Shown here in pieces: positions 29,781 to 46,029 of a stretch of DNA of 64,000 nt (position 1 is its first letter; every line of letters begins with the position of its first letter). The DNA is taken from sequence record KJ019086.1; one strand, given 5' to 3'. Made by a program: the position numbers and the translations under genes. The notes under the pieces were generated by a model. That model saw nothing but the letters and a program-made list of their open reading frames with translations, had not been told where the DNA came from and searched no databases.

Positions 29781-31001
29781 GTGATGAGAATTGATTTCAG
29801 TAACTTTTTCCAATACTATGATGGTGATCTAAAGAACCATGTAGAATCAATTGCTCTACTAGAGCGTGAGATTGAAAAAGTTGCTCCCCATCTCCTCCAG
29901 GACGAAGCAGAATGGGTTAAGGTATATCGCAATACTGCTGAGGTTGAGAAACCAGATAAGGTTATTGCCCTACCCGTACCCTACTTCCCCCAGACAGATA
30001 ACTACACACAACCAGAGAGGACTTGTAACTCCTCCTCCTGTGCTATGTGTCTAGAATACTTTAGACCTGGAACTCTAGTTGGTTCTAAAGGTGATGACGC
30101 GTATATCAGAAAGGTATTTGCTGTAGGTGATACTACAGATCACTCAGTTCAAACTAAAGTTCTAGCAGACTATGGTGTAGATTCTGAGTTCAACTATTCA
30201 CTCAGTTTTGATAACCTAGATCACGAACTTGAGAACAAGAGACCTGTTGTGATTGGTATCCTCCACAGAGGAACCCTAGCACACCCCACAGGGGGTCATA
30301 TGGTGGTTGTGATAGGTAAGACGGCAGAAGGTGATTACATCTGTCACGACCCCTACGGAGACCTTAACGACGGATATACAACCAATGTATACAACGGTCA
30401 GTCTGTTGTGTATAAGAGAAATGTTCTAGAGGCTAGATGGACTCCTGACGGTCCTACCAGTGGTTGGGGGCGTACTTTCCAGGCGAAAGTAACCGCAAAA
30501 AAGTCTGAGGAGGGTAAGTTGCCCTCCGCTGGTGTTGAACTTATCAAAGAGTTTGAAGGACTTCATGTTCTAAAATCTGACGGAATGATTCATGCTTATC
30601 CTGACCCTCTATCTGGTGGTGAACCCTGGACTATTGGTTGGGGTTCTACTAGGGATCTTGATGGATCAGCATTCCATCCTGGGGATAAAATCACCAGAGA
30701 GAAAGCAGACATCCTCCTAGAGGAACAACTTAGAAGAGATTATCTTTCTAAGTTAGAGCAAACCATTCCCTATTGGGATGAGATGAATGACAACCAGCAT
30801 GGTGCTCTACTCAGTTTTGGGTATAACCTAGGAGCCAGTTTCTACGGAAGTCCTGATTTTAACACAATAACCCGTGTTTTGCGAGACAAAGAGTGGAATA
30901 AAGTCCCCGACGCGTTATACTTGTATCGTAACCCCGGAACTCCTGTAGAGGAGGGTCTTTCTAGACGACGGATTGCAGAAGGAGAACTTTGGGAGAGCTG
31001 A
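29781..31001 (+). CDS. modular endolysin: C39-like cysteine peptidase plus GH24 lysozyme
   Basis: VPYFPQ.D...TCNSSSCAM...GHMVVVIG...HDPYG; LIKEFEG...AYPDP...WTIGWG...ALLSF.YNLG...RRIAEGELW. Confidence 0.85.
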   Translation: MMRIDFSNFFQYYDGDLKNHVESIALLEREIEKVAPHLLQDEAEWVKVYRNTAEVEKPDKVIALPVPYFPQTDNYTQPERTCNSSSCAMCLEYFRPGTLVGSKGDDAYIRKVFAVGDTTDHSVQTKVLADYGVDSEFNYSLSFDNLDHELENKRPVVIGILHRGTLAHPTGGHMVVVIGKTAEGDYICHDPYGDLNDGYTTNVYNGQSVVYKRNVLEARWTPDGPTSGWGRTFQAKVTAKKSEEGKLPSAGVELIKEFEGLHVLKSDGMIHAYPDPLSGGEPWTIGWGSTRDLDGSAFHPGDKITREKADILLEEQLRRDYLSKLEQTIPYWDEMNDNQHGALLSFGYNLGASFYGSPDFNTITRVLRDKEWNKVPDALYLYRNPGTPVEEGLSRRRIAEGELWES

Positions 31002-31421
31002 ATGATTGCACTTGATATATTCTGTGACTGGTTCACTGGGAGATGGAACAACCGTGCTCAGGCACATTCCAACCCCAGAGGTCAGGCATATGTGATGGCT
31101 AGACACGATAGGATATCAGACACAGAGTTTCGATGTGTTTATCACTACCATAGGGATAAGACCCCTTATAGGGACTTTACCCTGAATATCAACGGACATG
31201 ATAGTGATATTATTCTGTCTGATAAGGAAACCAGGTTAGTTTATTCTTTATATAACGGAGCGTATACCTGTCACTTTGATAAGATAATCAAAGGAAAAAG
31301 ATATGTATTTGATTCTGTATTAGCGAATACTTTCTATAAACTTAATGATCAGTGTTTTGATGGAACCCGATTAGTTCGGGGTCTAGAAACCGGTGAGTTT
31401 TATGACTTTAGAAAGGAATAA
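31002..31421 (+). CDS. cpeT: CpeT/CpcT-type phycobilin lyase
   Basis: F..WFTGRWNNRAQA..NP...A...PYR...C.F...L..G...FYDF.K pattern. Confidence 0.75.
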   Translation: MIALDIFCDWFTGRWNNRAQAHSNPRGQAYVMARHDRISDTEFRCVYHYHRDKTPYRDFTLNINGHDSDIILSDKETRLVYSLYNGAYTCHFDKIIKGKRYVFDSVLANTFYKLNDQCFDGTRLVRGLETGEFYDFRKE

Positions 31422-31423
31422 TA

Positions 31424-31558
31424 TTATCTAATCCCCACCCACCATTCGCGAGCACAGTTTGCGATTTGTTCTGCGGTGGGGTTTTCTACGCGGATAATCT
31501 CAGAGCACTCATCTATCATTTCCTCTAGATGTTTATTGCAGGTAGCGAGATCGTTCAT
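31424..31558 (-). CDS. small hypothetical protein on the minus strand (start uncertain, up to 31609)
   Basis: Non-overlapping minus-strand ORF convergent with cpeT. Confidence 0.4.
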   Translation of the reverse strand: MNDLATCNKHLEEMIDECSEIIRVENPTAEQIANCAREWWVGIR

Positions 31559-31749
31559 TTGCTTGTGCCTTGATATTTTCGCAGTCATGAGAATACTAAC
31601 AATGATCACATATAGAGTTATTTAGTTCTCAGAGAACTCTCAGTTGTGGGAAATGTGTAATGTGATATAATGTAAATATCTTCATATTTTCTTCATATAC
31701 ATAATGAAGAAACTATTAAGTTTCACATTGTCGTTTGTAAATTAAAGTT

Positions 31750-32397
31750 TTGGATTCCAATAAGAGATCGATTATTAGAAAACTAGCAGCTATTGCTGCG
31801 ATTGGCTTCGTGGGTATTCCCGCTGGAGCTGGTCTAATCCCTACTCTAGAACAGTTTCAAGAAGAAAATGGATATGGTACTGAGGAAGTAGTAGAGGATA
31901 CAACTGAAGAGGTAGTAGAAGAAGAAGTAGCAATGACAAGGCGTTGGGTTCTCCCCAATGGAACACATAATGAGAAGATAGTACTCAGTGCCCTACAGGA
32001 TAGGGGTATTACTGATAAAGTTGCTCTAGCGGTTGTTTTAGGTAATATCAAACAAGAGTCACGATTCCATTCCAACATCTGTGAGGGTGGTGCAAGGGTC
32101 AACTATCATGGTTGTAGATATGGTGGGTATGGTCTTATCCAATGGACTACTTCAGATAGATATAGAGGACTTGGACACTACGCTTCTAGGATTGGTGGTG
32201 ATCCTTCCAGTGTAGAAACTCAGGTTGGATATATCTTCAGAGAGAGGCAGTGGTTGGACATTGAATCATCCCTCAAAAGAAATGGTCATAGTGTTGGTTA
32301 CTACATGAATAGGGCATATTACTGGTTGGGATGGGGTCACCATGGAGCCAGAACCCACTACTCACATGACTATGCTGCTCGTCTCATCTTTAAATAA
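31750..32397 (+). CDS. exported phage-tail-lysozyme-family cell wall hydrolase
   Basis: N-terminal hydrophobic signal; ALAVVLGNIKQES...GYGLIQWT..R; TTG start. Confidence 0.75.
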   Translation: MDSNKRSIIRKLAAIAAIGFVGIPAGAGLIPTLEQFQEENGYGTEEVVEDTTEEVVEEEVAMTRRWVLPNGTHNEKIVLSALQDRGITDKVALAVVLGNIKQESRFHSNICEGGARVNYHGCRYGGYGLIQWTTSDRYRGLGHYASRIGGDPSSVETQVGYIFRERQWLDIESSLKRNGHSVGYYMNRAYYWLGWGHHGARTHYSHDYAARLIFK

Positions 32398-32411
32398 ATA
32401 GATGAAACCCA

Positions 32412-32807
32412 ATGAAAGTCCCAGAGTTTAAAGTCAGTTTTCAGTTTGGTAAGAAGAAGAAAAACCCCCTACGTCTATACATTATAGGGGCAGTTTTGAG
32501 CTTTGTTATCGATATGATACATACTTTTATGAGGGTTCCCACAAAGGACCTCTGGGCTTTGGTTGACGAATTGGGAAAAGAGCTTAGAATAGAAGATATC
32601 AATGAGCTCGTTTTGAATAGTCCCGAACTACTACAGGCTAGAATCGAACGAGAAGTTGATGGAGCTATTGAGGACCATCTTAAAGAAACAGGTCACAAAG
32701 ACCCAGAGATTGAATCAGTATTTACTGAAACACTAAAGGGAGAAACCCCCTTAGGTGGTGAACTAAGAATCCGTGGTAAGTGGGTTCCTGAAAATAAGGA
32801 GGACTAA
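32412..32807 (+). CDS. hypothetical protein
   Basis: 131-aa ORF. Confidence 0.75.
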   Translation: MKVPEFKVSFQFGKKKKNPLRLYIIGAVLSFVIDMIHTFMRVPTKDLWALVDELGKELRIEDINELVLNSPELLQARIEREVDGAIEDHLKETGHKDPEIESVFTETLKGETPLGGELRIRGKWVPENKED

Positions 32808-32968
32808 TGAAACGACACAACAAAGTGATGCACCTTATCCGTGAGTCTCTTCGTAACCCAGAAGCATATTCTGAGGAAGAGATTACATATATGAGAGAGC
32901 AACTCAAACTACTGGAGGGTGAGAAGGAAACTATTAAACGGGAGAAGAATCGTGGATTTGGATCTTAA
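32807..32968 (+). CDS. small conserved hypothetical protein (53 aa)
   Basis: GGAGG RBS; YSEEEITYMREQL...KNRGFG. Confidence 0.7.
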   Translation: MKRHNKVMHLIRESLRNPEAYSEEEITYMREQLKLLEGEKETIKREKNRGFGS

Positions 32969-33398
32969 ATTCATTGGAGATGAGTGTCTTAGGAAACCAT
33001 CAGTAAATGTTGAAGATATCACAGAGGATGTGGTAACTTTATCCAAGGCAATGAAACAGAAGATGGTTGAGTGTAATGGTATTGGTCTAGCAGCCCCACA
33101 GGTTGGTAGGAATATCAGACTTATAGTTGTGCGACTAATGTGTGGTATGACTGTGGAGATGATTAATCCACGCATCAGTTGGACTTCTGATGACAGATGC
33201 ATACTTGATGAAGGTTGTCTTAGTATCCCTGGAAAAACACACCCTGTTGAGAGGTATAAATCCATCAGAGTTAAATTTCAGGACATTACAGGACAACATA
33301 AATATTGGAAATTATCTAAGATGGACGCACGAGTGGTTCTACATGAGTATGATCATTTGGAAGGTTTATTGATGGTTGATTACCAGAAGACTGGTTAA
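32952..33398 (+). CDS. def: peptide deformylase
   Basis: GIGLAAPQVG, EGCLS and HEYDHLEG; GTG start 32952 preferred. Confidence 0.95.
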   Translation: MDLDLKFIGDECLRKPSVNVEDITEDVVTLSKAMKQKMVECNGIGLAAPQVGRNIRLIVVRLMCGMTVEMINPRISWTSDDRCILDEGCLSIPGKTHPVERYKSIRVKFQDITGQHKYWKLSKMDARVVLHEYDHLEGLLMVDYQKTG

Positions 33399-33414
33399 CT
33401 TTATAGTATTAACA

Positions 33415-33606
33415 ATGATTATGAAAACGAAGAGAGAGCGTCTTGAAGATGTCATTATGGAATATCTAGATGAAGAATACTCGTCTCGACGTATCTACGA
33501 AGAATTCTTATCAGTAATGATGAATGAATGTCAAGGTAGGGAGGAGGCATCTAAGAAAGCCTTAGAACTTAGAGACTTGATGTTAGGTGATAGACCTGTA
33601 TTTTAA
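33415..33606 (+). CDS. hypothetical protein
   Basis: RERLEDVIMEYLDEE...; start adjusted. Confidence 0.65.
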   Translation: MIMKTKRERLEDVIMEYLDEEYSSRRIYEEFLSVMMNECQGREEASKKALELRDLMLGDRPVF

Positions 33607-33624
33607 CAAAGGAGATTATCAATT

Positions 33625-33936
33625 ATGACTAAAGAAGTTAGCGATTTGAAACTCACACGACTTGAGTGTGTGAAGTGTGGCGCCACTTGGATCAATGGTA
33701 ATCATGTATGGAAGACTGGTAATACTGGAAGTGAAACCGATCTAGCTGGGTTAGTTTGCAATAAACTAGGTGATGACGATTGCATCAACCCCCTAAGGGG
33801 TGCTGAGACAGGTGACACTTGGGAACAACGCCTTGGTGACCTGGATACTGGATTCAATGCAAGGAGAGAGCGTCTAGAAGACCAGAGAGCAAGGTTCAAA
33901 GAACAATATGGGGAAGACCCTCACTTTGACGATTGA
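33625..33936 (+). CDS. conserved hypothetical protein (Cys-rich)
   Basis: CVKCGATWING.H.W.TG...DLAGLVCN...CINP. Confidence 0.8.
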   Translation: MTKEVSDLKLTRLECVKCGATWINGNHVWKTGNTGSETDLAGLVCNKLGDDDCINPLRGAETGDTWEQRLGDLDTGFNARRERLEDQRARFKEQYGEDPHFDD

Positions 33937-34004
33937 GGAAGTGGCACACCCCCTAGGCAAACCTATGGGGATGCGTTATAATATGAAGGTAATCAACCAG
34001 AGAG

Positions 34005-34220
34005 ATGACACAGCTTAAAACAAAGTTCCGCAGGTATATCGGTGTTCTCACTGAAGCCGTATCTCGTTCCATCGAGTTAGACTACTCACAACCCAAACTC
34101 TATAAGAAGGTCCGAAGGTTCTATGAGGAACAGGGAGTCTCCTTCACTGGAGACGAGGTAGATGACTACCAAATTGTTATGGATTGTTTAACTGAAGATC
34201 TAGTAAAGGAGCCAGTATGA
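34005..34220 (+). CDS. conserved hypothetical protein
   Basis: Follows a TATAAT box; LYKKVRRFYEEQGV.FTGD. Confidence 0.75.
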   Translation: MTQLKTKFRRYIGVLTEAVSRSIELDYSQPKLYKKVRRFYEEQGVSFTGDEVDDYQIVMDCLTEDLVKEPV

Positions 34221-34453
34221 AGACTATTCTTGAGAGAGAAGGTTTCCGTTTCATTGAGAAAGGTATTATTGAACTCAATGGAATGCCAGACTACCGACTA
34301 CAGAAACAAGATCACTATTCCCAACGATGGAATGATGTTTATCTCTTCGATAACAAGATGCAGTGTCTAACTGCTATGGAAGATATCGAATATTGTAAGT
34401 GGTTGTGTGGAGAACCCTGTTATGTTCGTGATGTTGTTGGTTCCTATTCATAG
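34217..34453 (+). CDS. conserved hypothetical protein
   Basis: GIIELNGMPDYRLQ..D.YS.RW.D.YLFDN.MQC. Confidence 0.8.
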   Translation: MKTILEREGFRFIEKGIIELNGMPDYRLQKQDHYSQRWNDVYLFDNKMQCLTAMEDIEYCKWLCGEPCYVRDVVGSYS

Positions 34454-34684
34454 ATGAGAACTACATCCTTCCTAAGGTATCTTGGAAATACCTTACTAGT
34501 GTTGGGTCATTTCACACTCCTTTGGGGGGATACACAGACCGCCTTGACTATCAAAATCATAGGTGGTCTTTCTTTGTTACCCTTTGCCATCTCCTGGAAG
34601 TTGTGGGATGTTGTGGCACTTGAGTTAATATTTGGAGGTATGGATGTAACCAAGTTCATCCAGTTACTATTCAGCAACTCCTAG
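34454..34684 (+). CDS. small membrane protein
   Basis: Three hydrophobic segments. Confidence 0.7.
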   Translation: MRTTSFLRYLGNTLLVLGHFTLLWGDTQTALTIKIIGGLSLLPFAISWKLWDVVALELIFGGMDVTKFIQLLFSNS

Positions 34685-34733
34685 CACCATAGGGTTTCTT
34701 TATTCCCTTACAAAGATGAAGTGGCGCACCTGA
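34685..34733 (+). ncRNA. candidate wcaG RNA motif (3' part)
   Basis: AGGG/CCCT hairpin whose loop CTTTAT can pair with ATGAAG; GGTTTC...AAAGA...GTGGCG..CCTGA layout as I recall for wcaG; upstream of gmd/wcaG genes. Confidence 0.4.
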
Positions 34734-34762
34734 TTGGCAAACCCAAAAATATGTGTTATACT
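34734..34762 (+). promoter_or_regulatory. promoter TTGGCA-N17-TATACT
   Basis: 34734-34739 and 34757-34762. Confidence 0.7.
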
Positions 34763-34767
34763 GGGTA

Positions 34768-34853
34768 GGTATTGGTAGCGTTTTCAGGGGTGAATAAACT
34801 ACCAATACCAATCTAAACTCATAGAAAACCACTCCTCATGGGGTGGTTTTTTT
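34768..34853 (+). ncRNA. orphan small RNA: 11-bp hairpin plus terminator
   Basis: GGTATTGGTAG/CTACCAATACC stem; AAAACCACTCC/GGGGTGGTTTT terminator; no ORF. Confidence 0.55.
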
Positions 34854-34887
34854 GTGCGCGTATAACTAGTGTAACTTGGGTTACATT

Positions 34888-35184
34888 ATGAAAGCCGACG
34901 CACAACTAGAACACCACGCCAATTGTTGGAATTCTATTCGAAATAATGATAAGGAATACTTTAAGATAGGAGTTGGTGTTTATAAAACTATCAACGCTGA
35001 TAGGGAATACTATATCAATAGTCGTATTGAAACTGATAAGAATAGTGATATATCAGAGATGGATCAAGTGAAAGAAGCCCACTCCAAACACTTAAGTTAT
35101 TTTATTGGATACAAATCAGAAGTAACAGTTGAAGCTATCAGTAGTGATTGGAAATCTACCCTATACCGGGTTACTACCTGCTAG
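34888..35184 (+). CDS. hypothetical protein
   Basis: ORF between the terminator and the gmd promoter. Confidence 0.55.
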
Positions 35185-35216
35185 GGTGTGTTATAATAGA
35201 TGAAATGCATGTTGTG

Positions 35217-36215
35217 ATGAAAGCTTTAATCTCTGGTATAACTGGGCAGGATGGATCCTATCTTGCTGAACTTCTACTGAAGAAGGGGTATGAAGTCCAT
35301 GGTATTATTCGTAGAACCTCCTCGTTTAATACAGGAAGAATCGATCATATCTTCGATCAGTTACACCTCCACTACGGGGATTTGACTGACTCCCTGAACA
35401 TAGTCTCTATCATTAAGGAAGTGGAACCTGATGAGATATACAACCTAGGGGCACAGAGTCATGTGAAAGTATCCTTTGAGGAACCTGAATATACAGCACA
35501 GACTGATGCTCTGGGAACCCTAAGAGTATTGGAGGCAGTTCGTCTCCTAGGTATGACAGATAAGGTTCGTATCTACCAGGCATCCACTAGTGAGTTGTAT
35601 GGGTTGGTACAAGAGACACCCCAGAAAGAAACAACACCTTTCTACCCACGATCTCCATATGGTGTAGCTAAACTCTATGGATATTGGATTGTAAAGAACT
35701 ATCGTGAGAGTTATGGGATGCACGCCAGTAGTGGTATTCTATTCAACCATGAGTCACCACGACGGGGTGAGACTTTCGTAACCCGTAAGATTACTAGGGG
35801 ACTATCCCGTATTAGTACAGGACTACAGGATTGTCTATACCTAGGTAATCTAAACTCAAGACGAGATTGGGGTCATGCTGAAGACTATGTGGAGGCTATG
35901 TGGTTGATGTTACAACAGGAAACTCCTGATGACTATGTGATTGCCACAGGTAAAGAGTATTCAGTGAAGGACTTTGTAGAGGCATCTGCTGAATACTTTG
36001 GTATGAAGATTGAGTGGCAGGGTGAAGGATTGGATGAAGTGGGTATAGATAGATTTACAAAGAAGGTTGTCGTTCGTGTGAGTGACAAATACTTCAGACC
36101 AGCAGAGGTTGAAACTCTCTGGGGTGATCCCACTAAGGCTAAAGAGGTATTGGGTTGGAAACCTAATCATACCTTTGCTTCCCTAGTAGAAGATATGTGT
36201 ATCTACGGTCAGTAA
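35217..36215 (+). CDS. gmd: GDP-mannose 4,6-dehydratase
   Basis: [43 protein letters not shown] and RDWGHA. Confidence 0.97.
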
Positions 36216-36217
36216 TT

Positions 36218-37144
36218 ATGGAAAAAGGTGCAACGGTAGCAGTATTTGGTTCGGGTGGATTGGCTGGAAGTGCCATCACCAGGGCACTCAGGTGTTCTTT
36301 TGGGGGGTATAAGATTCTTACTCCTAGGAGTAAAGAACTAGACCTAAGAGAACAAGCAGATGTTCGTAGTTGGTTTAAGCATAACAAAGTTGATTATGTA
36401 TTCTTAGCTGCTGCCTTAGTTGGTGGTATCATGGCTAACAAGACTAGAAAGGCAGAGTTCTTACATGACAATCTAATGATGCAGTGTAATGTAATTGACT
36501 CTGCATACTATAGTGGAGTGAAGAAACTTCTATTCCTAGGTACTTCTTGTATCTATCCAGCAGGAAGGCACCATCCACTAGTGGAACATGAACTACTCAC
36601 AGGACTATTAGAACCAACCAATGACGCATACGCAATCGCAAAGATCGCAGGGATCAAACAATGTGACTTCTACCGAGAACAATATGGATTTGATGCTATC
36701 TCTATCATGCCTCCTAATCTATATGGTCCTGGAGATAATTTCAATGAGGGATCAGGACATGTCCTCGCCTCACTAATGAATAGGTTTCACCTAGCGAAGG
36801 AAGCAGGTGCATCTAGAGTTGAATGTTGGGGTGATGGATCACCTATGAGAGAGTTTCTATATGTGGATGACTTAGCAGATGCTTCCTTATACTTTATGAA
36901 TAGTTATAGTGAGTCTGGGCACATTAATACTGGGACTGGTAGGGATGTAACTATCAAACAACTAGCGGAGACTATTGCTGATGTAGTTGGATACAAAGGT
37001 GAGATAGGTTGGGATACAACTAAACCCAACGGAAACCCAAGGAAACTACTTGACAGCAGTAGGGCAAACCTGTTAGGATGGGAACCCAAGGTTAAATTTG
37101 AAGACGGAATCAAACTCACATACAACTGGTATCTAGCACAATGA
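36218..37144 (+). CDS. fcl: GDP-4-keto-sugar epimerase/reductase (Fcl/WcaG; possibly ColC)
   Basis: GSGGLAG, LAAALVGGI, GTSCIYP, YAIAKIAG, NLYGPGDNF and REFLYVDD. Confidence 0.92.
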   Translation: MEKGATVAVFGSGGLAGSAITRALRCSFGGYKILTPRSKELDLREQADVRSWFKHNKVDYVFLAAALVGGIMANKTRKAEFLHDNLMMQCNVIDSAYYSGVKKLLFLGTSCIYPAGRHHPLVEHELLTGLLEPTNDAYAIAKIAGIKQCDFYREQYGFDAISIMPPNLYGPGDNFNEGSGHVLASLMNRFHLAKEAGASRVECWGDGSPMREFLYVDDLADASLYFMNSYSESGHINTGTGRDVTIKQLAETIADVVGYKGEIGWDTTKPNGNPRKLLDSSRANLLGWEPKVKFEDGIKLTYNWYLAQ

Positions 37145-38334
37145 CAAAGATTACAAATGGATATACGTGGCCTCTTATGAAGGACACTGTGACCAAGAGA
37201 GATAGGTTGAGGATGGCAAAGTTTATCCTCACCAGTGATAGACTAACACAAGGTAAAGAAGTTCGTAAGTTTGAGGAGCAGTGGAGTGAGTGGCTTGGAG
37301 TTAAACATTCTCTTTTTGTTAGCAGTGGCAGTACCGCTAACCTACTTCTTGTGTCTGCTTGGAAGGAATTATACGAGATCCCAGACCAGTCGAAAGTAAT
37401 TGTACCTGCTTGTACTTGGGTAACTAATGTTGCTCCTATCATCCAGTGTGGTTTGACTCCAATCTTTTGTGACATCAACTTAGAAGACTACTCCTTTGAT
37501 CTGGATAAACTACAGGATATTCGTGATGAATATCACGATGACATCAGAGGTATCTTTGTTACTCACCTCCTAGGATTTCCTGCTAATGTGGAAAAGTTTC
37601 GTGATGTTTTCCCCGACGCTCATATTCTAGAAGATGTATGTGAGAGTCACGGAGCAGTCCTCCCTAGTGGTGATAAGGCGGGAACCTTTGATGTTGGTGG
37701 CACATTTAGTTTCTACTTTGGGCACCACATGACTACCATTGAAGGTGGTATGGTGAGTACTAATGATCCAGAACTCTATGATCTAATGAGAATGAAGCGT
37801 TCTCACGGGTTAGCGAGAGAATCACTATACTTTGAAACATACAAAGAGAAGTATCCTGATGTAAATCCACAGTTTCTCTTCGTTACTGAGGGATATAACT
37901 TCCGTAATACTGATCTAGCTGCTGTATTAGGACAGTCTCAACTGAAGAGACTAGACAGTATGATTGGGATTCGTAACAGGAACTATGAGTTATACCAACA
38001 ATTACTAAAGAAACACGAACATGACCTTACACATGAGTATGGTGGTTCTTTCTATATCCCCTCCACACAGGGGGATGTAAGTAGTTTCTGTTTTCCATTT
38101 GTAGTTGATAATATGCACTGCTATCTTAAGTTAAAAGAACTTCTAGAAGAATACTATGTTGAGTATCGACCTATTGTGAGTGGTAACCTCCTACGACAAC
38201 CATTCTTGAGAGAATATTCTGCTGAGTGTCCCAAGGCAGATATAGCCCATGAAAAGGGACTATATATTGGGAATAATCACTTTGTAGATGAGTCTAACTT
38301 TCACATGCTAGATGAGATTTTGAGCCAACTTTGA
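37141..38334 (+). CDS. colD: PLP-dependent GDP-4-keto-6-deoxy-D-mannose 3-dehydratase (ColD-type, DegT family)
   Basis: VSSGSTAN, EDVCESHG, TFSFYFGHHMTTIEGG with His at the Lys position; RSHG and no Fe-S Cys cluster. Confidence 0.75.
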   Translation: MTKITNGYTWPLMKDTVTKRDRLRMAKFILTSDRLTQGKEVRKFEEQWSEWLGVKHSLFVSSGSTANLLLVSAWKELYEIPDQSKVIVPACTWVTNVAPIIQCGLTPIFCDINLEDYSFDLDKLQDIRDEYHDDIRGIFVTHLLGFPANVEKFRDVFPDAHILEDVCESHGAVLPSGDKAGTFDVGGTFSFYFGHHMTTIEGGMVSTNDPELYDLMRMKRSHGLARESLYFETYKEKYPDVNPQFLFVTEGYNFRNTDLAAVLGQSQLKRLDSMIGIRNRNYELYQQLLKKHEHDLTHEYGGSFYIPSTQGDVSSFCFPFVVDNMHCYLKLKELLEEYYVEYRPIVSGNLLRQPFLREYSAECPKADIAHEKGLYIGNNHFVDESNFHMLDEILSQL

Positions 38335-38335
38335 T

Positions 38336-39130
38336 ATGACATTTTCATTTAATCATATGGGCAACTTGGGGCATCTGGGAAACCAGATGTTTCAGTATGC
38401 CGCACTCATTGGTATGGGGGCTAAGCATGGGAGGAGTATTTGTATCCCCCATAAACAAAGTTTTGGGCAATCATACTACCAGGATCTTCGTAGTAATATC
38501 TACGATGCTTTCAACCTCTCACCCAATGGTGTAGGTATCAGTAGGTTCCCCACAGTTCAGGAAGGTAGTTTCCACTTTGATGAAAACTTATTTGAGAACC
38601 CACCAGAGGAGAACTGTAACCTCTATGGATTCTTCCAGAGTGAAAAGTGGTTCTCACATATCAAAGAAGGTATTAAGAAAGAGTTCACTCTAAAGGATGA
38701 ATACCGGGAAGTGGCACAACTGATGAGAGAACAACTCTCTGGTCAGGTTGTTGCTATTCATGTTCGTAGAACTGACTACCTATCCAATCCAAACCACGGA
38801 GCATTGGGTTTAGATTACTATGAGAAGGCACTGGAGTTGGTTCCTAATAACCTTACAGTAGTTGTATTCACTGATGATCCAGAGTGGGCTAAAGAACAAC
38901 CACTCTTTCCAGATGATAGGTTCTTTGTATCAGAGACAGACTGTCCCTATACAGACCTTGCTCTTATGAGTATGTGTGATTATCATATTATTGCCAACAG
39001 TTCATACTCTTGGTGGGGTGCATACTTATCTGATAGTAAGAAAGTAATTGCTCCTAAACAGTGGTTTGGGGAACCACTTAAAACAAATAACCTGAAAGAT
39101 CTTTATTGTGATGGGTGGGTGAAACTATGA
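38336..39130 (+). CDS. GT11 alpha-1,2-fucosyl/colitosyltransferase
   Basis: G.LGNQMFQYA, GFFQSEKWF, HVRRTDY, YYEKA, FTDDPEW and ANSSYSWWGA. Confidence 0.93.
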   Translation: MTFSFNHMGNLGHLGNQMFQYAALIGMGAKHGRSICIPHKQSFGQSYYQDLRSNIYDAFNLSPNGVGISRFPTVQEGSFHFDENLFENPPEENCNLYGFFQSEKWFSHIKEGIKKEFTLKDEYREVAQLMREQLSGQVVAIHVRRTDYLSNPNHGALGLDYYEKALELVPNNLTVVVFTDDPEWAKEQPLFPDDRFFVSETDCPYTDLALMSMCDYHIIANSSYSWWGAYLSDSKKVIAPKQWFGEPLKTNNLKDLYCDGWVKL

Positions 39131-39750
39131 GTAACTTTGCAAGTGCTAAACAGTTTATCAAGAATGGTATTGATACACAACAGGAGTCTATCTCTGGTGG
39201 TGGCAGCACTATGGCTTCCACAGTTGCCTTCAGATACTTCCTACCAAAGTATATCAAACAGTATGGTATTGAGAGTATCTTAGACATTGGGTGTGGTGAC
39301 TGGCATTGGATGTCTACTATCAGAGAAGAGTTTCCTGATGTAGACTATGAGGGATGGGATGCCTCTGAGGATATGATTAATCCCATGACTGAGAAGTATG
39401 GAACAGAGAATACCAGGTTTGAGGTAAAGGATATCATTGATAACAAGTATCCCAAAGTGGATTTGGTTATCGCTCGTGATGTTCTATTCCACCTCAAAGA
39501 AGATTACCTAAAGAAGGTTCTCAAGAATATCAGTAAGGCAGGTGTGAAGTATCTACTAGCAACTACCTTCCCAGGTTTACCTAAGAACGAAGAACTCACT
39601 CCTAAGAAATATGACGGTTGGGGATTCAGACCAATCAATCTGGATATCGAGCCTTATAATATGAAAGATTATTGTATCAATGATTTCAAGGAAACCACAG
39701 CCCCCAACAGGGGGTATCATCGTCATGTGTATTTGTATGAGGTAAAATGA
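39127..39750 (+). CDS. class I SAM-dependent methyltransferase
   Basis: SGGGS..., ILDIGCGD, DLVIARDVLFHL and RPINL..EP.N. Confidence 0.85.
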   Translation: MSNFASAKQFIKNGIDTQQESISGGGSTMASTVAFRYFLPKYIKQYGIESILDIGCGDWHWMSTIREEFPDVDYEGWDASEDMINPMTEKYGTENTRFEVKDIIDNKYPKVDLVIARDVLFHLKEDYLKKVLKNISKAGVKYLLATTFPGLPKNEELTPKKYDGWGFRPINLDIEPYNMKDYCINDFKETTAPNRGYHRHVYLYEVK

Positions 39751-39899
39751 AGATCGAAATTGAACTCTCTAAAGATGTAGAATACAAAGGAGAGAAACTA
39801 GGTGAGTATATCTGGAACCTAGAAGAGGGAATTAATCATGTTACTGGTTTTGGTGATTCACTTGAGGAATGTTTTAAGGAAATTGTGAGGTTTAGATGA
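39747..39899 (+). CDS. small hypothetical protein (50 aa)
   Basis: ATGA overlaps at both ends; YIWNLEEG...DSLEECF. Confidence 0.6.
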   Translation: MKIEIELSKDVEYKGEKLGEYIWNLEEGINHVTGFGDSLEECFKEIVRFR

Positions 39900-40627
39900 A
39901 GAAAGTAGCTATTATCTTTATTGGAACAGGTAGATACCTAGAGTTTCTACCAAAGTATTATGAACAGGCAGAAGCAAACCTCTTCCCTGACAGACCCAAA
40001 CACTACTATGTGTTTACTGATGGTGACTTAGGTAATGAACTACCTGACAATGTAACTGTATACGAACAGGAACATCTCCAATGGCCATATATCACCCTCT
40101 ATCGTTTTGGTATTATCCAGAAACACTTAGAGGAGATTGAGAAAGAGTGTGGTTTCCTACTCTTTATGGACGCTGACACACAGGTAGTATCCCCTGTATC
40201 GTTCGATGAAGTATTCAAGAAGGGAAAACCCTATACAGGTGTTCACCACCCCTGTCACGCCCTGAATATGCCACCACACAATGAGTTTCCTGGTAGTCTA
40301 GAAACTAATACAGCATCTAAGGCAGCATGTAAACCTGGTGATGACTTCTCTGTCTATTGGCAAGGTTGTGTCTGGGGTGGAAACATCAAGGGTGCTCGTA
40401 AGATTATCGATACTCTCCACCATAGAACTAAACAGGACGAGGAGAATGGTATTGTTGCTCTATGGCATGATGAAAGTCATATCAATAGATACTTCCTTGA
40501 TAATAAAGATAAGGTGAATACCCTATCACCTAGTTTCGCATACCCAGAGTCCTTCACTGAGTATATGGAAGACTATGAACCTAAGATTGTACACCTAGCA
40601 AAAGAGAATTCTAAGTATCAGGTATGA
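39896..40627 (+). CDS. GT6 glycosyltransferase (ABO/alpha-1,3-Gal(NAc)T family)
   Basis: FIGTGRY, YYVFTD, WP..TL.RF, FMDAD, YWQGCVWGG and WHDESHINRY. Confidence 0.92.
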   Translation: MKKVAIIFIGTGRYLEFLPKYYEQAEANLFPDRPKHYYVFTDGDLGNELPDNVTVYEQEHLQWPYITLYRFGIIQKHLEEIEKECGFLLFMDADTQVVSPVSFDEVFKKGKPYTGVHHPCHALNMPPHNEFPGSLETNTASKAACKPGDDFSVYWQGCVWGGNIKGARKIIDTLHHRTKQDEENGIVALWHDESHINRYFLDNKDKVNTLSPSFAYPESFTEYMEDYEPKIVHLAKENSKYQV

Positions 40628-41247
40628 GTTACTTCACAGATTATGACAACGAATTCACAGTATTCGAGGCACCAAAGAACGGGGGAACTACTCTCCGTCT
40701 TTGGATATACTACGCAGGAACAGGGGAGTTAGTAAAGTCAGCGGAGTCTGAATACTACGCTGGCACTGGAGAAACATACAAACAACTCCAAGAGTGGGGT
40801 TATGTGAATGGGGAATACGAGAACCCCAAGACCCAGATGGTATGTATCAAGAGAGACCCTGTAGATAGGTTTGTAAGTGCCTTCTATGATAAGGTAATCA
40901 AAGAGGGGAGAATCAAAGTAACCATCGATGAGTTTCTCTCAAACTATGAAGAGATACTTGATAAGTCTACCCTCAAGATGAATGATGGTAAGACTAACTT
41001 CATGAAGTTTCACTTTGAGTCACAGACATATCACTTCGGTAAAGATAAAGATCTATATCATAAGGTCTTTGATATCTCAGAGGTTGGTACTGGTCTGAAG
41101 AAGTATCTGGAGGGTAAGTGGAATATAGAACTACCTGATGTCCATGCTAGAAATAGTGGTGGTGGTCGGAAGTTTGATCTCTCCAGGGGACAACTGAATA
41201 AGGTGAAGGAAATCTACACACAGGACTATTATAATGGCTGGTACTGA
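40624..41247 (+). CDS. sulfotransferase (Sulfotransfer_2-like)
   Basis: PKNGGTT (5'-PSB), RDPVDRFVSAF (3'-PB) and HF..Q. Confidence 0.8.
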   Translation: MSYFTDYDNEFTVFEAPKNGGTTLRLWIYYAGTGELVKSAESEYYAGTGETYKQLQEWGYVNGEYENPKTQMVCIKRDPVDRFVSAFYDKVIKEGRIKVTIDEFLSNYEEILDKSTLKMNDGKTNFMKFHFESQTYHFGKDKDLYHKVFDISEVGTGLKKYLEGKWNIELPDVHARNSGGGRKFDLSRGQLNKVKEIYTQDYYNGWY

Positions 41248-42019
41248 AGGATATATCCTGATAGGTATTGGTGATAGGTATCTACAGATGACAGAGAACC
41301 TCACTAAAACTCTAAAGAAACATGGAGACAATAGAGGATCCCTAACTATCACAAGATCAGATAATAGGGAACTCTATAGTGAGTGTAACACTGAGTTTGA
41401 GAGGAATGGAACTCTACCTAAGATTACCTTAGACAGATACTTACCTTTTGATCACAATATATTCCTAGATGCTGATATGTTATGTGTAGGTGATACCCAA
41501 CATGTATGGGATCTATTCAGGAGTAGTGATCAGTTTGTTCAACAGGTAGGATGTACTCAGAGAGATCCTGCTTTCCACGCTCACCAGTATGAGAGTGAGT
41601 TGGGTTTTGAGATTCCTAGAGTCCATGGTGGTTGTATCTACATCAATAGAGAGAAACTAGACCCAGGGTTCTTTCCCTATATGAGAGAGTGTTTCCTAAA
41701 CTATAAACAAATATTTCATAATAGTGGTCTAACCTATAAGAATAGTAGACCAGATCAACCACTATACGCTCTAGCAAATGGTATGTGGGGATTCAAACCT
41801 GTGGATCTATACACTAACCCTATCATGACTATTGTGAATGATAGTACCCCACCCCCACTAGATAGTGTGTTCTTCAATAAGAAGAGGGGTCCTAAGTTAG
41901 ATACTCCTGTTCCCTTTGTTCATGTATTCCGTGGAGAAGAGGGTATGTCTAAGGGTTATACTAGAGGTGACCAGAAGATGTTGTTGTCCCATTATGATTA
42001 CTACCTGAACTATGAATAA
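41234..42019 (+). CDS. GT-A glycosyltransferase (GT8-like)
   Basis: K...D.YLPFD..IFLDAD, HGG..Y and DQP..A. Confidence 0.65.
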   Translation: MAGTEGYILIGIGDRYLQMTENLTKTLKKHGDNRGSLTITRSDNRELYSECNTEFERNGTLPKITLDRYLPFDHNIFLDADMLCVGDTQHVWDLFRSSDQFVQQVGCTQRDPAFHAHQYESELGFEIPRVHGGCIYINREKLDPGFFPYMRECFLNYKQIFHNSGLTYKNSRPDQPLYALANGMWGFKPVDLYTNPIMTIVNDSTPPPLDSVFFNKKRGPKLDTPVPFVHVFRGEEGMSKGYTRGDQKMLLSHYDYYLNYE

Positions 42020-42800
42020 AACTATATGGATGTGTTGGTTCCAGGGTTGGGATAAGGCACCAGAGATTACAGAGAAGTGTTTAGAGTCCTGGAAACACTA
42101 CAATAGTGATTGGGATATTGTTCTACTAGATGAATCCAACTACAAGGATTACATCTCCATTGATAAAGAACTACCAGGACTGAAGACAAACTATATCTCA
42201 CTGGGTGATATCCTTCGTCTCTTTCTACTAAAAGAGCATGGTGGAGTATGGGCAGATGCAACTATCTTCTGCAACAAACCAGTGGATTGGGTTTTGGATT
42301 ATGAGGATTCTTTCATCTTCACCAGGAAGGATAAGATGATTGCCTCTTGGTTTGTTGCTGCTCAGAAAGATTCCCATGTTGTAGATGTATGGTATAATAA
42401 GATGTTAGAGTTCTGGAAGTATCGTATGGAAAATACAGATACTTTCGAGCAACAATATGGTTGGATACACGCTTTGTTCCGTCAGTCCTACGCTCAGGAT
42501 AAGGGGTTCAGGGATATTGTAGATAGTATGGATAAGATTGATTGCATGAGTGATGGTCAATCTAGAGGTAAGGGTCCGCACTTCTTTGCACCCTACAGTA
42601 AATACTTCTACAACCCTATCAGTGACACGATAAAGAATCGTATAGACTCTAAAGTTGATCCACTATATAAGTTGTCTTACAAGGCAAACACAGACTGGAG
42701 AAGTCCAGAGAACAGGGGTATCCACCCAGCAGACCAAAAGATTATGTTGGAATATCCAACTAATAGTGAACTACATTATCTACTCAACACATTAAAATGA
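42012..42800 (+). CDS. capsular polysaccharide synthesis-type glycosyltransferase (GT32-like)
   Basis: KTIWMCWFQG, D.LRL.LLKEHGGVWADAT. Confidence 0.85.
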   Translation: MNKTIWMCWFQGWDKAPEITEKCLESWKHYNSDWDIVLLDESNYKDYISIDKELPGLKTNYISLGDILRLFLLKEHGGVWADATIFCNKPVDWVLDYEDSFIFTRKDKMIASWFVAAQKDSHVVDVWYNKMLEFWKYRMENTDTFEQQYGWIHALFRQSYAQDKGFRDIVDSMDKIDCMSDGQSRGKGPHFFAPYSKYFYNPISDTIKNRIDSKVDPLYKLSYKANTDWRSPENRGIHPADQKIMLEYPTNSELHYLLNTLK

Positions 42801-43702
42801 CAAATAAATCATTGGTTACCGGTGGCGCGGGTTTCATCGGGTCACATATTGTGGACCGACTTATTACACTAGGACATCAAGTCGTAGTGATTGACAATGA
42901 ATCCTCTGATGGTCATGATGAATACCATTGGAACAGAAGCGGACAAGTACAAAACCATAAGGCAGACATTCGTGACTACGATGCAATCAAACACTTGTTT
43001 GGTGGAGTCAATAATGTTTTTCACCTTGCCGCTAAAGCATCAGTACAGGCGTCAGTAGATAACCCCCTACCAACTATTGCCACACAGGTAATGGGAACCG
43101 CCAATGTATTGGAGGCAGCACGACAATCTGGTGTGAGTAAGTTTGTATATTCCTCTACTAGTGCTTGTTATGGTAACAACAACCCCATTCCTAATGTAGA
43201 AACGATGAGAGAAGATCCTCTCAACGCCTATGCTATTGGTAAGTTATCTGGGGAACAACTAGTTCGTGCCTATCACTACCTCTATGGTATGAAGACGGTG
43301 GCATTCCGTTATACCAATGTATATGGGGAGAGGGCAAGACATGTTGGACATTACGCTCCTGCTGTTAGTAAGTTTCTAAAGATGAGAGCACAGGGAGAAC
43401 CTCTAACTATCTTTGGTGATGGTGCCCAACGCCGAGACTTTATTCATGTATCTGATGTAGTCAACGCTAACTGCTGTATTACCTATGAGGAACTAGAGCA
43501 GTGGGGTGAGACCTACAACATTGGTTATGGTAAGAACTGGAGTATCCAAGAGATTGCAGACTCTATCAGTCAGGAACAGATTCACCTATCTGCTCGTACT
43601 GGTGAGATGCGTGAGACGCTTGCTGATATTGGGAAGGCAAAGGCAGAGTTGATGTGGAAACCAAAGACTGACATCATGGATTGGATTAGGGTACAACTCT
43701 GA
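42797..43702 (+). CDS. NAD-dependent epimerase/dehydratase (extended SDR, GalE-like)
   Basis: VTGGAGFIGSH, HLAA..SV..S, YAIGK, RYTNVYG and RDFIHVSD. Confidence 0.92.
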   Translation: MTNKSLVTGGAGFIGSHIVDRLITLGHQVVVIDNESSDGHDEYHWNRSGQVQNHKADIRDYDAIKHLFGGVNNVFHLAAKASVQASVDNPLPTIATQVMGTANVLEAARQSGVSKFVYSSTSACYGNNNPIPNVETMREDPLNAYAIGKLSGEQLVRAYHYLYGMKTVAFRYTNVYGERARHVGHYAPAVSKFLKMRAQGEPLTIFGDGAQRRDFIHVSDVVNANCCITYEELEQWGETYNIGYGKNWSIQEIADSISQEQIHLSARTGEMRETLADIGKAKAELMWKPKTDIMDWIRVQL

Positions 43703-44319
43703 TGCCAGTATTTCAGAAGGACAACAAGAAAGTTCTATTCATCCATGTTCCCAAGACTGCAGGAAGTTCTGTGAATAAACTCTTTGCGAATAATGGATAT
43801 GAAATGTCCTACTATTCTGAGAGTTCTAAAGATCTATACAATGGATTATGTGGACCACAACATCTGGACTCACTTCTATTGGAAGATGAGTTCCAAGATT
43901 TCTCTCAGTTTGATTATATCTTCTCTATCTTCAGAGACCCAGTAGACAGACATCTATCTGAGTTCACCTGGGCACCCTGGGGACTAATGGGTAGAAACAT
44001 CTACACACCAGAAAGATTTGATGAGTGGTGTCCTAAGATATTCAGAGCGTATCAGGACTCACCATATAGGATGGATAATCACATTAGACCTCAACATGAG
44101 TTCTATGTCAATGGATGTGATGTGTATGACTATGAAAATATCAATACACTCACAGAGAAACTATGTGATAAAATAGGTCTAGATAATAAAGAGATGCCAT
44201 ATGAAAGGTCTTCACGATATGATAGTGAGGATTATGTCATCTATGAAGATACTTACAATTGTATTACTGAATTTTACAAAGGAGACTATCAATGGCAAAA
44301 GGATTCAGTCCTGTTGTGA
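43702..44319 (+). CDS. sulfotransferase (Sulfotransfer_2-like)
   Basis: FIHVPKTAGSS, RDPVDR.LSEF and NH.RPQ.EF. Confidence 0.85.
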   Translation: MPVFQKDNKKVLFIHVPKTAGSSVNKLFANNGYEMSYYSESSKDLYNGLCGPQHLDSLLLEDEFQDFSQFDYIFSIFRDPVDRHLSEFTWAPWGLMGRNIYTPERFDEWCPKIFRAYQDSPYRMDNHIRPQHEFYVNGCDVYDYENINTLTEKLCDKIGLDNKEMPYERSSRYDSEDYVIYEDTYNCITEFYKGDYQWQKDSVLL

Positions 44320-45170
44320 CTAAGGATAAGAACAAGTCCCAGTTCAAACTACAGGGTGTTCCTAGGATTTACTACATCAGTTTAGATGATCATGCTCATC
44401 GTCAAGACTATATGGAGTCCCAGTTTGAAGACTGGGGCATCACTAACTTCGAAAGAATCTCTGCTCATGATGGTAGAGGTGATAATGATCTGAGTGATAT
44501 TCTCAAAGGATCTTATCCAAAGATGATGAGTTCTGGTGAGGTTGGTTGTGTAACCTCTCACCTAAAGGCACTAAAACACTGGTTAGATACTACAGAGGGT
44601 GAAGAGTTTCTCCTTATGATGGAGGATGATTGTGATATCTCCACTGCTGCCCACTGGGGTTTCTCCTGGAGGGAGTTTATTGGGAATATTCCATCCCATG
44701 TAGATTGTGTTCAGTTAGCAGTTATCAACCCATCAGAACTACATATCAAACTCCATATCAGGTTTGTGAATGATTTCTCCACTGCCTCATACCTAATCCG
44801 TAGATCACACGCAGAGAAGTTAGTTAGACTCTATTGTAGGGGTGATAAGTATAAACTTGATAGTGATATCAAACCCAGAGCAGTTGCTGATGATCTTATC
44901 TACAACTCTGGTGTGACTCTTGCTATGCCTCTATTTGCCTTCAAGATTGCACTAGGTTCCAGTATCCATGATGTCCATATCAATACCTTCCACAAGAGTA
45001 GTCATGATGGTATCTGGGAGTTTTGGAAGAAAACAGCACCAACTATTGAGAACTGGAAACCATTCTTCAACTATGATGCCTATCTGGGAACCCTACCACC
45101 CAATGTTGTGGTTCAACAATGGCAGCAAAAACAGGAATCCAAAGCAAAAGATTCAGGGGCTTCGCAATAG
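44292..45170 (+). CDS. GT25-family glycosyltransferase
   Basis: IYYISLD....R...M, ERISAHDGR, GEVGC..SH..A and MMEDD. Confidence 0.85.
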   Translation: MAKGFSPVVTKDKNKSQFKLQGVPRIYYISLDDHAHRQDYMESQFEDWGITNFERISAHDGRGDNDLSDILKGSYPKMMSSGEVGCVTSHLKALKHWLDTTEGEEFLLMMEDDCDISTAAHWGFSWREFIGNIPSHVDCVQLAVINPSELHIKLHIRFVNDFSTASYLIRRSHAEKLVRLYCRGDKYKLDSDIKPRAVADDLIYNSGVTLAMPLFAFKIALGSSIHDVHINTFHKSSHDGIWEFWKKTAPTIENWKPFFNYDAYLGTLPPNVVVQQWQQKQESKAKDSGASQ

Positions 45171-45214
45171 AACATATATATGTTATAATATTTACATTCA
45201 CCCATGAGGTTATT

Positions 45215-45334
45215 ATGAAATTTGGTTTTACCCCCGAAGCAGAAATCCTAAACGCTCGTTTGGCAATGTTGGGATTCGTTATCGCCGTAGGCACTTACTT
45301 GACCACAGGTCAGATTATTCCAGGAGTTCTTTGA
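45215..45334 (+). CDS. hli: high-light-inducible protein
   Basis: [19 protein letters not shown]...TGQIIPG. Confidence 0.93.
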
Positions 45335-45627
45335 TGGCGTTTTCTGTAACACTTAGATCACCTACTGGTGAAGATAAAGTTGTAACAGTGGAGGGAGATC
45401 AATACATCCTAGATGCCGCAGAGGAAGCGGGTGTAGATCTCCCATATTCATGTAGAGCTGGTGCTTGTTCATCCTGTGCAGGTAAGATTGTATCTGGAAA
45501 GGTGAATCAAGAAGACCAGTCATTCTTAGATGATGATCAGATCGAAGCAGGTTTCGCACTCTTATGTGTAGCTTATGCCGAATCTGATTGTGTGATTGAG
45601 ACGGAAAAAGAGGAAACCCTTTACTGA
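45331..45627 (+). CDS. petF: plant-type [2Fe-2S] ferredoxin
   Basis: [15 protein letters not shown]...LLCVAY. Confidence 0.97.
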
Positions 45628-45632
45628 GACTG

Positions 45633-45988: not shown

Positions 45989-45995
45989 TATTAGA

Positions 45996-46022: not shown

Positions 46023-46029
46023 GTGCTCC

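Follow-up and report, generated by a model that had tools for sequence, protein, structure and literature searches.

A predicted colitose pathway, with a GT11 glycosyltransferase, in a glycan gene cluster of Synechococcus phage ACG-2014f

Four consecutive genes of a marine cyanophage probably direct the synthesis and transfer of the 3,6-dideoxysugar colitose. They lie in a 64,000-nucleotide stretch of sequence record KJ019086.1, here called the window, and comprise gmd, a gene for an Fcl-family short-chain dehydrogenase/reductase (SDR), a gene for a DegT-fold protein and a gene for a GT11 glycosyltransferase. On sequence evidence, we put at about 0.6 the probability that these genes yield colitose and that the GT11 transfers it. 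The source is Synechococcus phage ACG-2014f isolate Syn7803US17 (KJ019086.1; 100% identity over window positions 35148–39750), a lytic, T4-like cyanomyovirus of ~227 kb (Kyanoviridae, Atlauavirus). Window position 35217 corresponds to position 159217 of the record. The isolate names suggest that the host is Synechococcus WH7803; the records carry no host field. The four-gene region is found in 45 deposited isolates of the ACG-2014f lineage at 95–100% nucleotide identity.

Tight coupling of the four genes had been noticed in the original prediction, and is confirmed by the open reading frames (ORFs) and the deposited coding sequences, which concur on gmd, fcl (the Fcl-family gene), the DegT-fold gene and the GT11 gene, all on the + strand. 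A 2-nt gap (36216–36217) separates gmd from fcl, fcl and the DegT-fold gene overlap by 4 nt (37141–37144), a single nucleotide (38335) lies between the DegT-fold and GT11 genes, and the GT11 gene overlaps a methyltransferase gene by 4 nt (39127–39130). The family matches of the four proteins have E-values of 1e-28 to 1e-167, far past chance. The ratio of nonsynonymous to synonymous substitution rates (dN/dS), determined against a relative in IMG/VR, is 0.05–0.25 for all four core genes (0.07 for gmd against locus L047), indicating purifying selection.

Motif, phylogeny and genomic context point to ColD-type chemistry for the DegT-fold protein, which we predict with good confidence to be a guanosine diphosphate (GDP)-4-keto-6-deoxymannose 3-dehydratase. 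The protein contains the peptide SFYFGHHMTTIEGG, and its codons CACCAC encode His195-His196 exactly where a lysine-to-histidine replacement had been claimed. Such a replacement marks sugar 3-dehydratases (review, PMC8987622). In alignment, Gly194-His195-His196 of the phage enzyme stand opposite Ser187-His188-His189 of ColD, so that His195 faces the catalytic His188, the position of the Schiff-base lysine in aminotransferases; the deposited H188N and H188K variants indicate which ColD histidine is the catalytic one. The His195 column is invariant in 12 homologues, and 85 of the 94 rows of a quick tree have histidine there. The stretches SSGSTAN and EDxCES are conserved between the phage enzyme and ColD, and Arg226 and Arg343 align with ColD Arg219 and Arg331; we take these to be cofactor and phosphate positions. 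Among solved structures the best match is E. coli O55 ColD (2gms; 176.5 bits, E = 8e-51), followed by a putative nucleoside diphosphate (NDP)-4-keto-6-deoxyglucose 3-dehydratase (9wvy, 123.9 bits), E1 (3bcx, 107.6 bits) and perosamine synthase (93.8 bits).

A [2Fe-2S] cluster is held through four cysteines in E1 and SpnQ but is absent from ColD, whose pyridoxamine 5′-phosphate (PMP) is regenerated from glutamate (PMC8987622). The predicted absence of the E1/RfbH iron–sulfur motif was borne out by a five-way alignment, in which RfbH and an enzyme of phage S-H68 share a cysteine-rich CYC...C segment (‘RDCYCAPGCDNTCGKRF’; ‘RGCYCVG...GVCGRRF’), and the ACG-2014f enzyme, its S-CAM7 counterpart and ColD are gapped there and lack the cysteines. 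Residues 220–223 of the phage enzyme read RSHG. The RfbH reference was a bona fide RfbH scoring 782.8 bits on the RfbH equivalog model (NF011936), and the ColD, ColC and WbgN references came from the O-antigen cluster of E. coli O55:H7 CB9615 (locus L128, NC_013941.1, 2553701–2562099).

The dehydratase is conserved at 98.5–100% amino acid identity across the 45 ACG-2014f isolates. Against its closest metagenomic relative (L047:5962 onward; IMGVR_UViG_3300004461_001069) it is 82% identical in amino acid sequence, with a dN/dS of 0.25, and the flanking genes are far less diverged in the same comparison (fcl 97%, GT11 97%). This unevenness suggests allelic replacement or recombination inside the cassette. 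The phage protein is further set apart by DLTHEYGG, an insertion of 8 residues found in none of the eleven aligned homologues.

Trees were built from relatives in 80 IMG/VR loci and 43 representative genomes, the paralogous DegT genes found there, and references; the quick tree has 94 rows and a careful tree 55. Both resolve four groups, each with 100% bootstrap support: a Lys-type group, an E1-like group (‘SFYPAHH’), classic ColD and a large group with the motif ‘SFYFGHH’. In the careful tree, all His-type rows group together (100/98), and the nine Lys-type paralogues of the fetched loci form a group of their own (100/98). The phage protein falls inside the SFYFGHH clade (34 rows, 100/92), which is sister to classic ColD (100/97). 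The latter, a clade of 7 rows, has serine ahead of the histidine pair and includes E. coli O55 ColD. The comparison with ColD, RfbH and aminotransferases proposed in the original prediction thus sets the phage protein apart from the Lys-type and E1-like groups, and this placement argues that it is neither an aminotransferase nor an E1. Motif, tree and best structural match agree on a ColD-like, His-type sugar 3-dehydratase.

The SFYFGHH clade is mostly viral or metagenomic and has no characterised member. Its cellular carriers (L003–L045) are almost all metagenome-assembled genomes (MAGs), assigned to sponge-associated Gammaproteobacteria, Bacteroidota, Thermodesulfobacteriota and many DPANN-type archaea (Woese-, Pace- and Nanoarchaeota). 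Viral DNA binned by mistake may account for part of these contigs.

A His-type 3-dehydratase of the E1/SpnQ-like kind, with the iron–sulfur cysteine motif, also occurs in cyanophages, namely S-H68 (L130:5842–7137), S-B05, S-B43, RB11-B and RN05-S. In S-H68, the cluster around it starts ~4.5 kb upstream with genes annotated as dTDP-glucose 4,6-dehydratase and 3,5-epimerase (dTDP, deoxythymidine diphosphate). Phages would then have a further dideoxy-sugar route of a different kind. Both kinds of dehydratase are present on contig L098 (7418 onward).

Relatives of the ACG-2014f dehydratase are encoded on 526 IMG/VR contigs; among deposited phages, close homologues are confined to the ACG-2014f lineage and S-CAM7. 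Gene context was counted in the 72 viral loci whose sequence extends 2.5 kb or more upstream of the dehydratase. Both gmd and an Fcl-family gene lie directly upstream of the dehydratase in 46 of them, gmd only in 13 and fcl only in one, so that gmd is nearby in 59 of 72. GT11 follows directly in 25/75 loci. The expected setting is present in ACG-2014f, where the enzyme is surrounded by genes of a GDP-mannose (gmd) pathway and has a GT11 after it. In some related loci (L101 and L118), the SDR that accompanies gmd and the dehydratase is of another kind, scoring only ~70 bits against Fcl, and gmd-fcl-GT11(-GT6) cassettes without a dehydratase occur as well (L132–L135, L138, L144, L145, L150 and L228).

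The original prediction had given the reductase encoded by the fcl gene the role of ColC; orthology to ColC could not be demonstrated. By BLASTP the phage reductase is 49% identical to E. coli Fcl (WcaG) and 39% to O55 ColC, which is itself 39% identical to Fcl; identity to the Fcl of phage P-SSM2 is 55%. The Fcl model of NCBIfam gives 551 bits for E. coli Fcl, 462 for P-SSM2 Fcl, 422 for the S-CAM7 reductase, 420 for the ACG-2014f reductase and 304 for ColC; the equivalog cut-off of 500 is passed by E. coli Fcl and missed by both the ACG-2014f reductase and P-SSM2 Fcl. The motifs GTSCIYP, YAIAK and GHV are conserved in the phage reductase, E. coli Fcl and ColC, and presumably hold the Ser/Tyr/Lys triad of the SDR family and the epimerisation Cys/His of Fcl. 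In an Fcl tree of 82 rows, the phage reductase belongs to a clade of 6 rows (100/100), all of them linked to a ColD-type gene, and ColC and other partners of classic ColD form a separate long branch (5 rows, 100/99). Joining the two clades was not rejected by the approximately unbiased (AU) test (p = 0.468), which placed the ColC branch neither with the phage clade nor apart from it.

Linkage to a dehydratase is scattered over the Fcl tree, where 9 changes are needed, 5 or more of them required by branches with good support; L018, L021 and L026, in which the dehydratase shares a stop-to-stop ORF with gmd, were scored as linked. Linked and unlinked Fcl proteins interleave: the Fcl of S-SKS1, a phage with no dehydratase in its genome, is 79.5% identical to the linked Fcl of L096, and that of S-SRM01 is 73.5% identical to the Fcl of L081. 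The simplest reading is that an ordinary Fcl would be sufficient downstream of the phage dehydratase. The 3-deoxy intermediate has no stereocentre at C3 to invert, so that C5 epimerisation and C4 reduction by Fcl would give L-colitose. In Campylobacter jejuni, C4-reductases of pathways without 3-deoxygenation take a 3-deoxy-4-keto GDP-heptose (PMC10680097). It follows that the phage probably still makes some GDP-fucose besides the colitose donor.

The phage GT11 is 32% identical to the colitosyltransferase WbgN and shares with it an H-x-R-R-x-D-Y stretch (HVRRTDY in the phage, HIRRGDY in WbgN). The natural donor of WbgN is GDP-colitose, and GDP-fucose is well tolerated (PMC12723683). A GT11 tree of 83 rows was rebuilt from 80 loci anchored on the GT11 itself, as a guard against sampling bias. 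The phage protein falls in an 8-row clade (SH-aLRT 96) whose members are all linked to a ColD-type gene, as are those of a weaker 14-row group, and all 41 of the 41 GT11s from loci without a dehydratase fall outside these groups. This co-inheritance supports a functional link between GT11 and dehydratase; donor specificity is not readable from sequence.

GT11 and GT6 recur together with or without a dehydratase (L049, L144, L145, L150 and L228 among many). In bacteria and vertebrates, these two families act in turn to form the H-antigen, followed by A/B-type blood-group structures. A stretch of the phage GT6, ‘FMDADTQ’, resembles a DXD motif by eye. Bacterial GT6 enzymes have Asn in place of Asp in this motif, with a single exception (PMC3961637).

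Several observations weigh against colitose as the product. The dehydratase is just 32% identical to E. coli ColD and has Gly194 where ColD has Ser187, and in the careful tree it lies outside the clade of characterised ColD enzymes, so that of the predicted ColD assignment the nearest kinship stands (100/97) and membership of the classic clade does not. Both identity and model score place the reductase nearer to Fcl than to ColC. WbgN, on its long branch, is no specific relative of the phage GT11; the likeness to a colitosyltransferase therefore extends to family and shared stretch, not to special kinship. In 12 of the 72 viral loci neither gmd nor fcl lies upstream of the dehydratase, and in one of the relatives (P0111, 59% identity) the dehydratase belongs to a different glycan cluster with no adjoining gmd or fcl; with these 12 loci, the SFYFGHH clade may not be uniform in substrate. 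Finally, a genome scan with two exact peptide patterns, which concerns the SFYFGHH clade alone, matched 43 loci, none of them cyanobacterial, and no clade member was found in picocyanobacterial representative genomes. No host glycan is thus known to need colitose.

The assignment as a 3-dehydratase could be right and the product still not L-colitose. Another 3,6-dideoxyhexose stereoisomer might be formed through the Fcl-type reductase or the SDR encoded at 42797–43702, or the sugar might be used only after methylation or sulfation. The reductase without demonstrable ColC orthology, the different SDR in L101 and L118, the methyltransferase and two sulfotransferase-like genes in the cluster, and the C. 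jejuni reductases that make different sugars from one 3-deoxy-4-keto intermediate (PMC10680097) all leave room for this. We nevertheless regard it as unlikely, since the coupled neighbour is of the Fcl type and retains the motifs with the presumed epimerisation Cys/His and the SDR triad, the known stereochemistry of Fcl (5-epimerisation and L-galacto reduction) gives colitose from a 3-deoxy substrate, and the GT11 family uses L-fucose-type donors. Quite improbable is a module for GDP-L-fucose and its fucosyltransferase alone, as in P-SSM2 and S-SKS1, in which the DegT-fold protein would be inactive or unrelated. Its gene is translationally coupled between fcl and the GT11 gene, the near-complete conservation among the isolates and the purifying selection speak for function, the cofactor-site stretches and the catalytic His are retained, and gmd co-occurs far too frequently for an unrelated role. 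These facts outweigh the Fcl-like reductase and the existence of very similar cassettes without a dehydratase.

Two further readings of the DegT-fold protein have very little probability. UniRef, JGI and the S-CAM7 record name it as a cytidine diphosphate (CDP)-4-keto-6-deoxy-D-glucose 3-dehydrase (E1/RfbH), as in pathways of the abequose, paratose or tyvelose type, and RfbH is indeed its top NCBIfam model. The score of 182.9 bits is nonetheless far below the RfbH cut-off of 423, and E. coli ColD scores 262.8 bits there; the protein has no iron–sulfur cysteine motif, the E1-like sequences form a clade apart (100% bootstrap), the neighbouring gene is gmd, and the window lacks genes for an E3-type reductase, a glucose-1-phosphate cytidylyltransferase and a CDP-glucose dehydratase. 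An aminotransferase making GDP-perosamine or a similar amino sugar would suit the DegT/DnrJ/EryC1 fold and the RefSeq product name, yet His195 replaces the Schiff-base lysine and the nine Lys-type paralogues group separately.

In the colitose pathway, Gmd, whose family assignment is clear (Table 1), would convert host GDP-mannose to GDP-4-keto-6-deoxy-D-mannose. The DegT-fold enzyme, with PMP and with His195 as acid/base, would then remove the C3 hydroxyl to give GDP-4-keto-3,6-dideoxy-D-mannose, the PMP being regenerated from L-glutamate with no iron–sulfur cluster or reductase partner. C5 epimerisation and C4 reduction with reduced nicotinamide adenine dinucleotide phosphate (NADPH) by the Fcl-type SDR would yield GDP-L-colitose; acting on the undehydrated 4-keto intermediate, the same SDR would yield GDP-L-fucose, so that a mixture of colitose and fucose donors is probable. 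Going by its family, the GT11 would place the 6-deoxy-L-sugar in alpha-1,2 linkage, probably onto a galactose-type acceptor, and the methyltransferase, GT6, two sulfotransferase-like proteins, Caps_synth glycosyltransferase, GalE-like SDR and GT25 would extend and decorate the glycan. The phage would express this module in infected Synechococcus.

Where this would happen is constrained by the cluster itself, a ~10-kb run of glycan genes that the four core genes open and that ends at 45170. No hydrophobic segment compatible with a membrane span was found in its twelve proteins, and it encodes no flippase, polymerase or ligase, which argues that the enzymes act on the cytoplasmic side. The acceptor may therefore be a surface polysaccharide or lipopolysaccharide (LPS) that is lipid-linked and made or exported by the host, or a cytoplasmic target such as a virion protein.

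Table 1. Predicted features of the glycan gene cluster of phage ACG-2014f (positions in the window).
Feature	Position	Strand	Evidence
Gmd	35217–36215	+	TIGR01472 equivalog, 555.5 bits (cut-off 415, passed); PF16363, 507.7 bits
Fcl-type GDP-4-keto-6-deoxyhexose epimerase/4-reductase	36218–37144	+	NF047922, 419.7 bits (cut-off 500, not reached)
ColD-like PMP/pyridoxal phosphate (PLP)-dependent predicted GDP-4-keto-6-deoxy-D-mannose 3-dehydratase, ‘SFYFGHH’ clade	37141–38334	+	PF01041, 202.4 bits, residues 20–375
His195-His196 codons CAC CAC	37723–37728	+	Within the dehydratase gene
GT11, candidate alpha-1,2-colitosyl/fucosyltransferase	38336–39130	+	PF01531, 98.3 bits (cut-off 23.9)
S-adenosylmethionine (SAM)-dependent methyltransferase, possibly glycan O-methylation	39127–39750	+	PF08242, PF13649 and related, ~42 bits
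GT6 (blood-group A/B transferase family)	39896–40627	+	PF03414, 75 bits; NF041524, 173 bits (below cut-off 250)
Sulfotransferase-family protein	40624–41247	+	PF03567, 29.2 bits
Conserved protein	41234–42019	+	No Pfam or NCBIfam match; homologues at the same position in L052 and L190
Caps_synth/DXD-type glycosyltransferase	42012–42800	+	PF05704, 141 bits; PF04488, 35.6 bits
GalE-like NDP-sugar epimerase/dehydratase (SDR)	42797–43702	+	PF01370, 211 bits; TIGR01179 galE, 176 bits (below cut-off)
Second sulfotransferase-family protein	43702–44319	+	PF03567, 32.4 bits
GT25, final gene of the cluster	44292–45170	+	PF01755, 44.4 bits

In related loci, GT6 often follows GT11, as it does here after the intervening methyltransferase gene. 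S-CAM7 has an adenylylsulfate (APS) kinase gene (L131:11747–12316) at the place equivalent to that of the sulfotransferase genes of ACG-2014f. Taken together, these genes suggest sulfation of the glycan made by the phage and, in some phages, a boosted supply of 3′-phosphoadenylylsulfate (PAPS) as well.

Sigma-70-like sites occur at the level expected by chance (32 found, 32.4 expected). The sole strong intrinsic-terminator-like hairpin on the + strand (45993–46019; an 11-bp stem followed by a T run) comes after hli, ferredoxin and hli genes and just before a tail-fibre gene (46070–48385). Its position, only after the cluster, lends weak support to the whole glycan cluster forming one long transcription unit, which may be co-transcribed with the photosynthesis-related genes. 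In phage S-SCSM1 a wcaG RNA motif is annotated ~1 kb upstream of gmd-fcl (L134:3904–3990); none was found in window positions 30000–48000 (Rfam, E ≤ 0.1).

Elsewhere in the window, a dense run at 8275–16327 contains three Dam-type DNA adenine methylase genes (8275–9174, 12507–13280 and 15446–16327), an HNH endonuclease gene (14892–15395) and a gene for a 953-aa protein (9619–12480), which is annotated as ‘cytitidyltransferase’ and has no Pfam match.

The original prediction expected automated annotation to miss the pathway. This is so for RefSeq, where the DegT-fold protein is an ‘aminotransferase’, and for GenBank, where it is a ‘hypothetical protein’. It is not so for UniRef and JGI, which already give it the name of a CDP-type 3-dehydrase, or for the GenBank record of S-CAM7, which has ‘putative CDP-4-keto-6-deoxy-D-glucose-3-dehydrase’. 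Such names would have the chemistry right and the nucleotide wrong; the genes for CDP-sugar synthesis and the E3-type partner that they imply are those missing from the window. NCBIfam apparently has no ColD or ColC model, as the O55 archetypes match the RfbH and Fcl models only, and below the cut-offs; its thresholds consequently cannot decide membership for the phage proteins. In E. coli O55 itself, PGAP/RefSeq names ColD a ‘DegT/DnrJ/EryC1/StrS family aminotransferase’, ColC a ‘GDP-L-fucose synthase family protein’ and WbgN an ‘alpha-1,2-fucosyltransferase’.

The 3,6-dideoxyhexoses are known from the O-antigens of enteric and marine bacteria, where they are strongly antigenic. Our literature search found no report of a virus-encoded 3,6-dideoxyhexose pathway, and nothing joining colitose with cyanophages, or cyanophages with 3-dehydratases or dideoxy sugars; the papers that mention both colitose and phages concern, in the portions available, O-antigen receptors and similar topics. 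Most likely, the phage genes represent the known colitose chemistry in viral form with three variant features, namely a dehydratase of the sister clade, a reductase of the Fcl type and an apparent plug-in to a fucose cassette. The last of these leads to a tentative proposal, which is possible but which we would not yet favour: the SFYFGHH dehydratase could be a plug-in gene, gained between fcl and GT11 or lost from that place time and again in phages of marine and fresh waters (at least five changes on the Fcl tree), its gain switching a fucosylation cassette to 3-deoxy-fucose (colitose) without a dedicated ColC. With this sugar, abundant ocean cyanophages would re-decorate infected cells or virions in an arms race over recognition between phage and host or between phages.

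If the colitose pathway is real, colitose would count among the rare sugars synthesised by viruses, the large uncharacterised sister family of ColD (on the IMG/VR contigs and in many MAGs) would gain a function, and an ordinary Fcl would be able to act as a colitose synthase. Phages with and without the dehydratase would also offer a natural comparison for the role of phage ‘LPS clusters’ in infection, a question that dates from the description of P-SSM2 in 2005. For annotation, the lesson lies in the RefSeq name ‘aminotransferase’ as against the CDP-sugar dehydrase names elsewhere.

Among known systems, the closest in chemistry is the colitose cluster of E. coli O55. Like ColD (WbdK; 2GMS, 2GMU and 3GR9), the phage enzyme has the DegT/aspartate-aminotransferase fold, the catalytic His followed by a second His, two conserved arginines and no iron–sulfur motif, and in O55, too, colD overlaps the preceding Fcl-family gene by 4 nt, with gmd and a GT11 gene in the same cluster. 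It differs in belonging to a sister clade and in its motif, SFYFGHH in the phage and S-x-F-(Y/F)-S-H-H in ColD. The phage reductase shares the extended SDR family with ColC (WbdJ; ColB in newer nomenclature) and Fcl/WcaG, the three motifs being common to all three, and like ColC it is encoded immediately upstream of the dehydratase; ColC, however, stands on its separate long branch, at the lower identity given above. WbgN, the alpha-1,2-colitosyltransferase of O55, is also a GT11 encoded in a cluster with gmd, ColD-type and Fcl-family genes. E1/RfbH (DdhC) and SpnQ perform a similar His-type, PMP-dependent C3 deoxygenation of an NDP-4-keto-6-deoxyhexose, but with a [2Fe-2S] cysteine motif that the phage enzyme lacks, a reductase partner, and CDP- or dTDP-sugars.

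The gmd-fcl-GT11(-GT6) cassettes of cyanophages P-SSM2, S-SKS1, S-SRM01 and S-SCSM1 resemble that of ACG-2014f in the style of their neighbourhoods and in consisting of soluble enzymes throughout. Comparable clusters in P-SSM2 were proposed to remodel the host surface (Sullivan et al., 2005; PMC1079782). The cassettes of these four phages have no 3-dehydratase, whereas those of ACG-2014f and S-CAM7 have one between fcl and GT11. S-CAM7 (C490910_225–228) carries the same four genes in the same order, with a dehydratase 65% and a reductase 79% identical to those of ACG-2014f; there, the four genes are followed by the adenylylsulfate kinase gene instead of the methyltransferase and GT6 genes.

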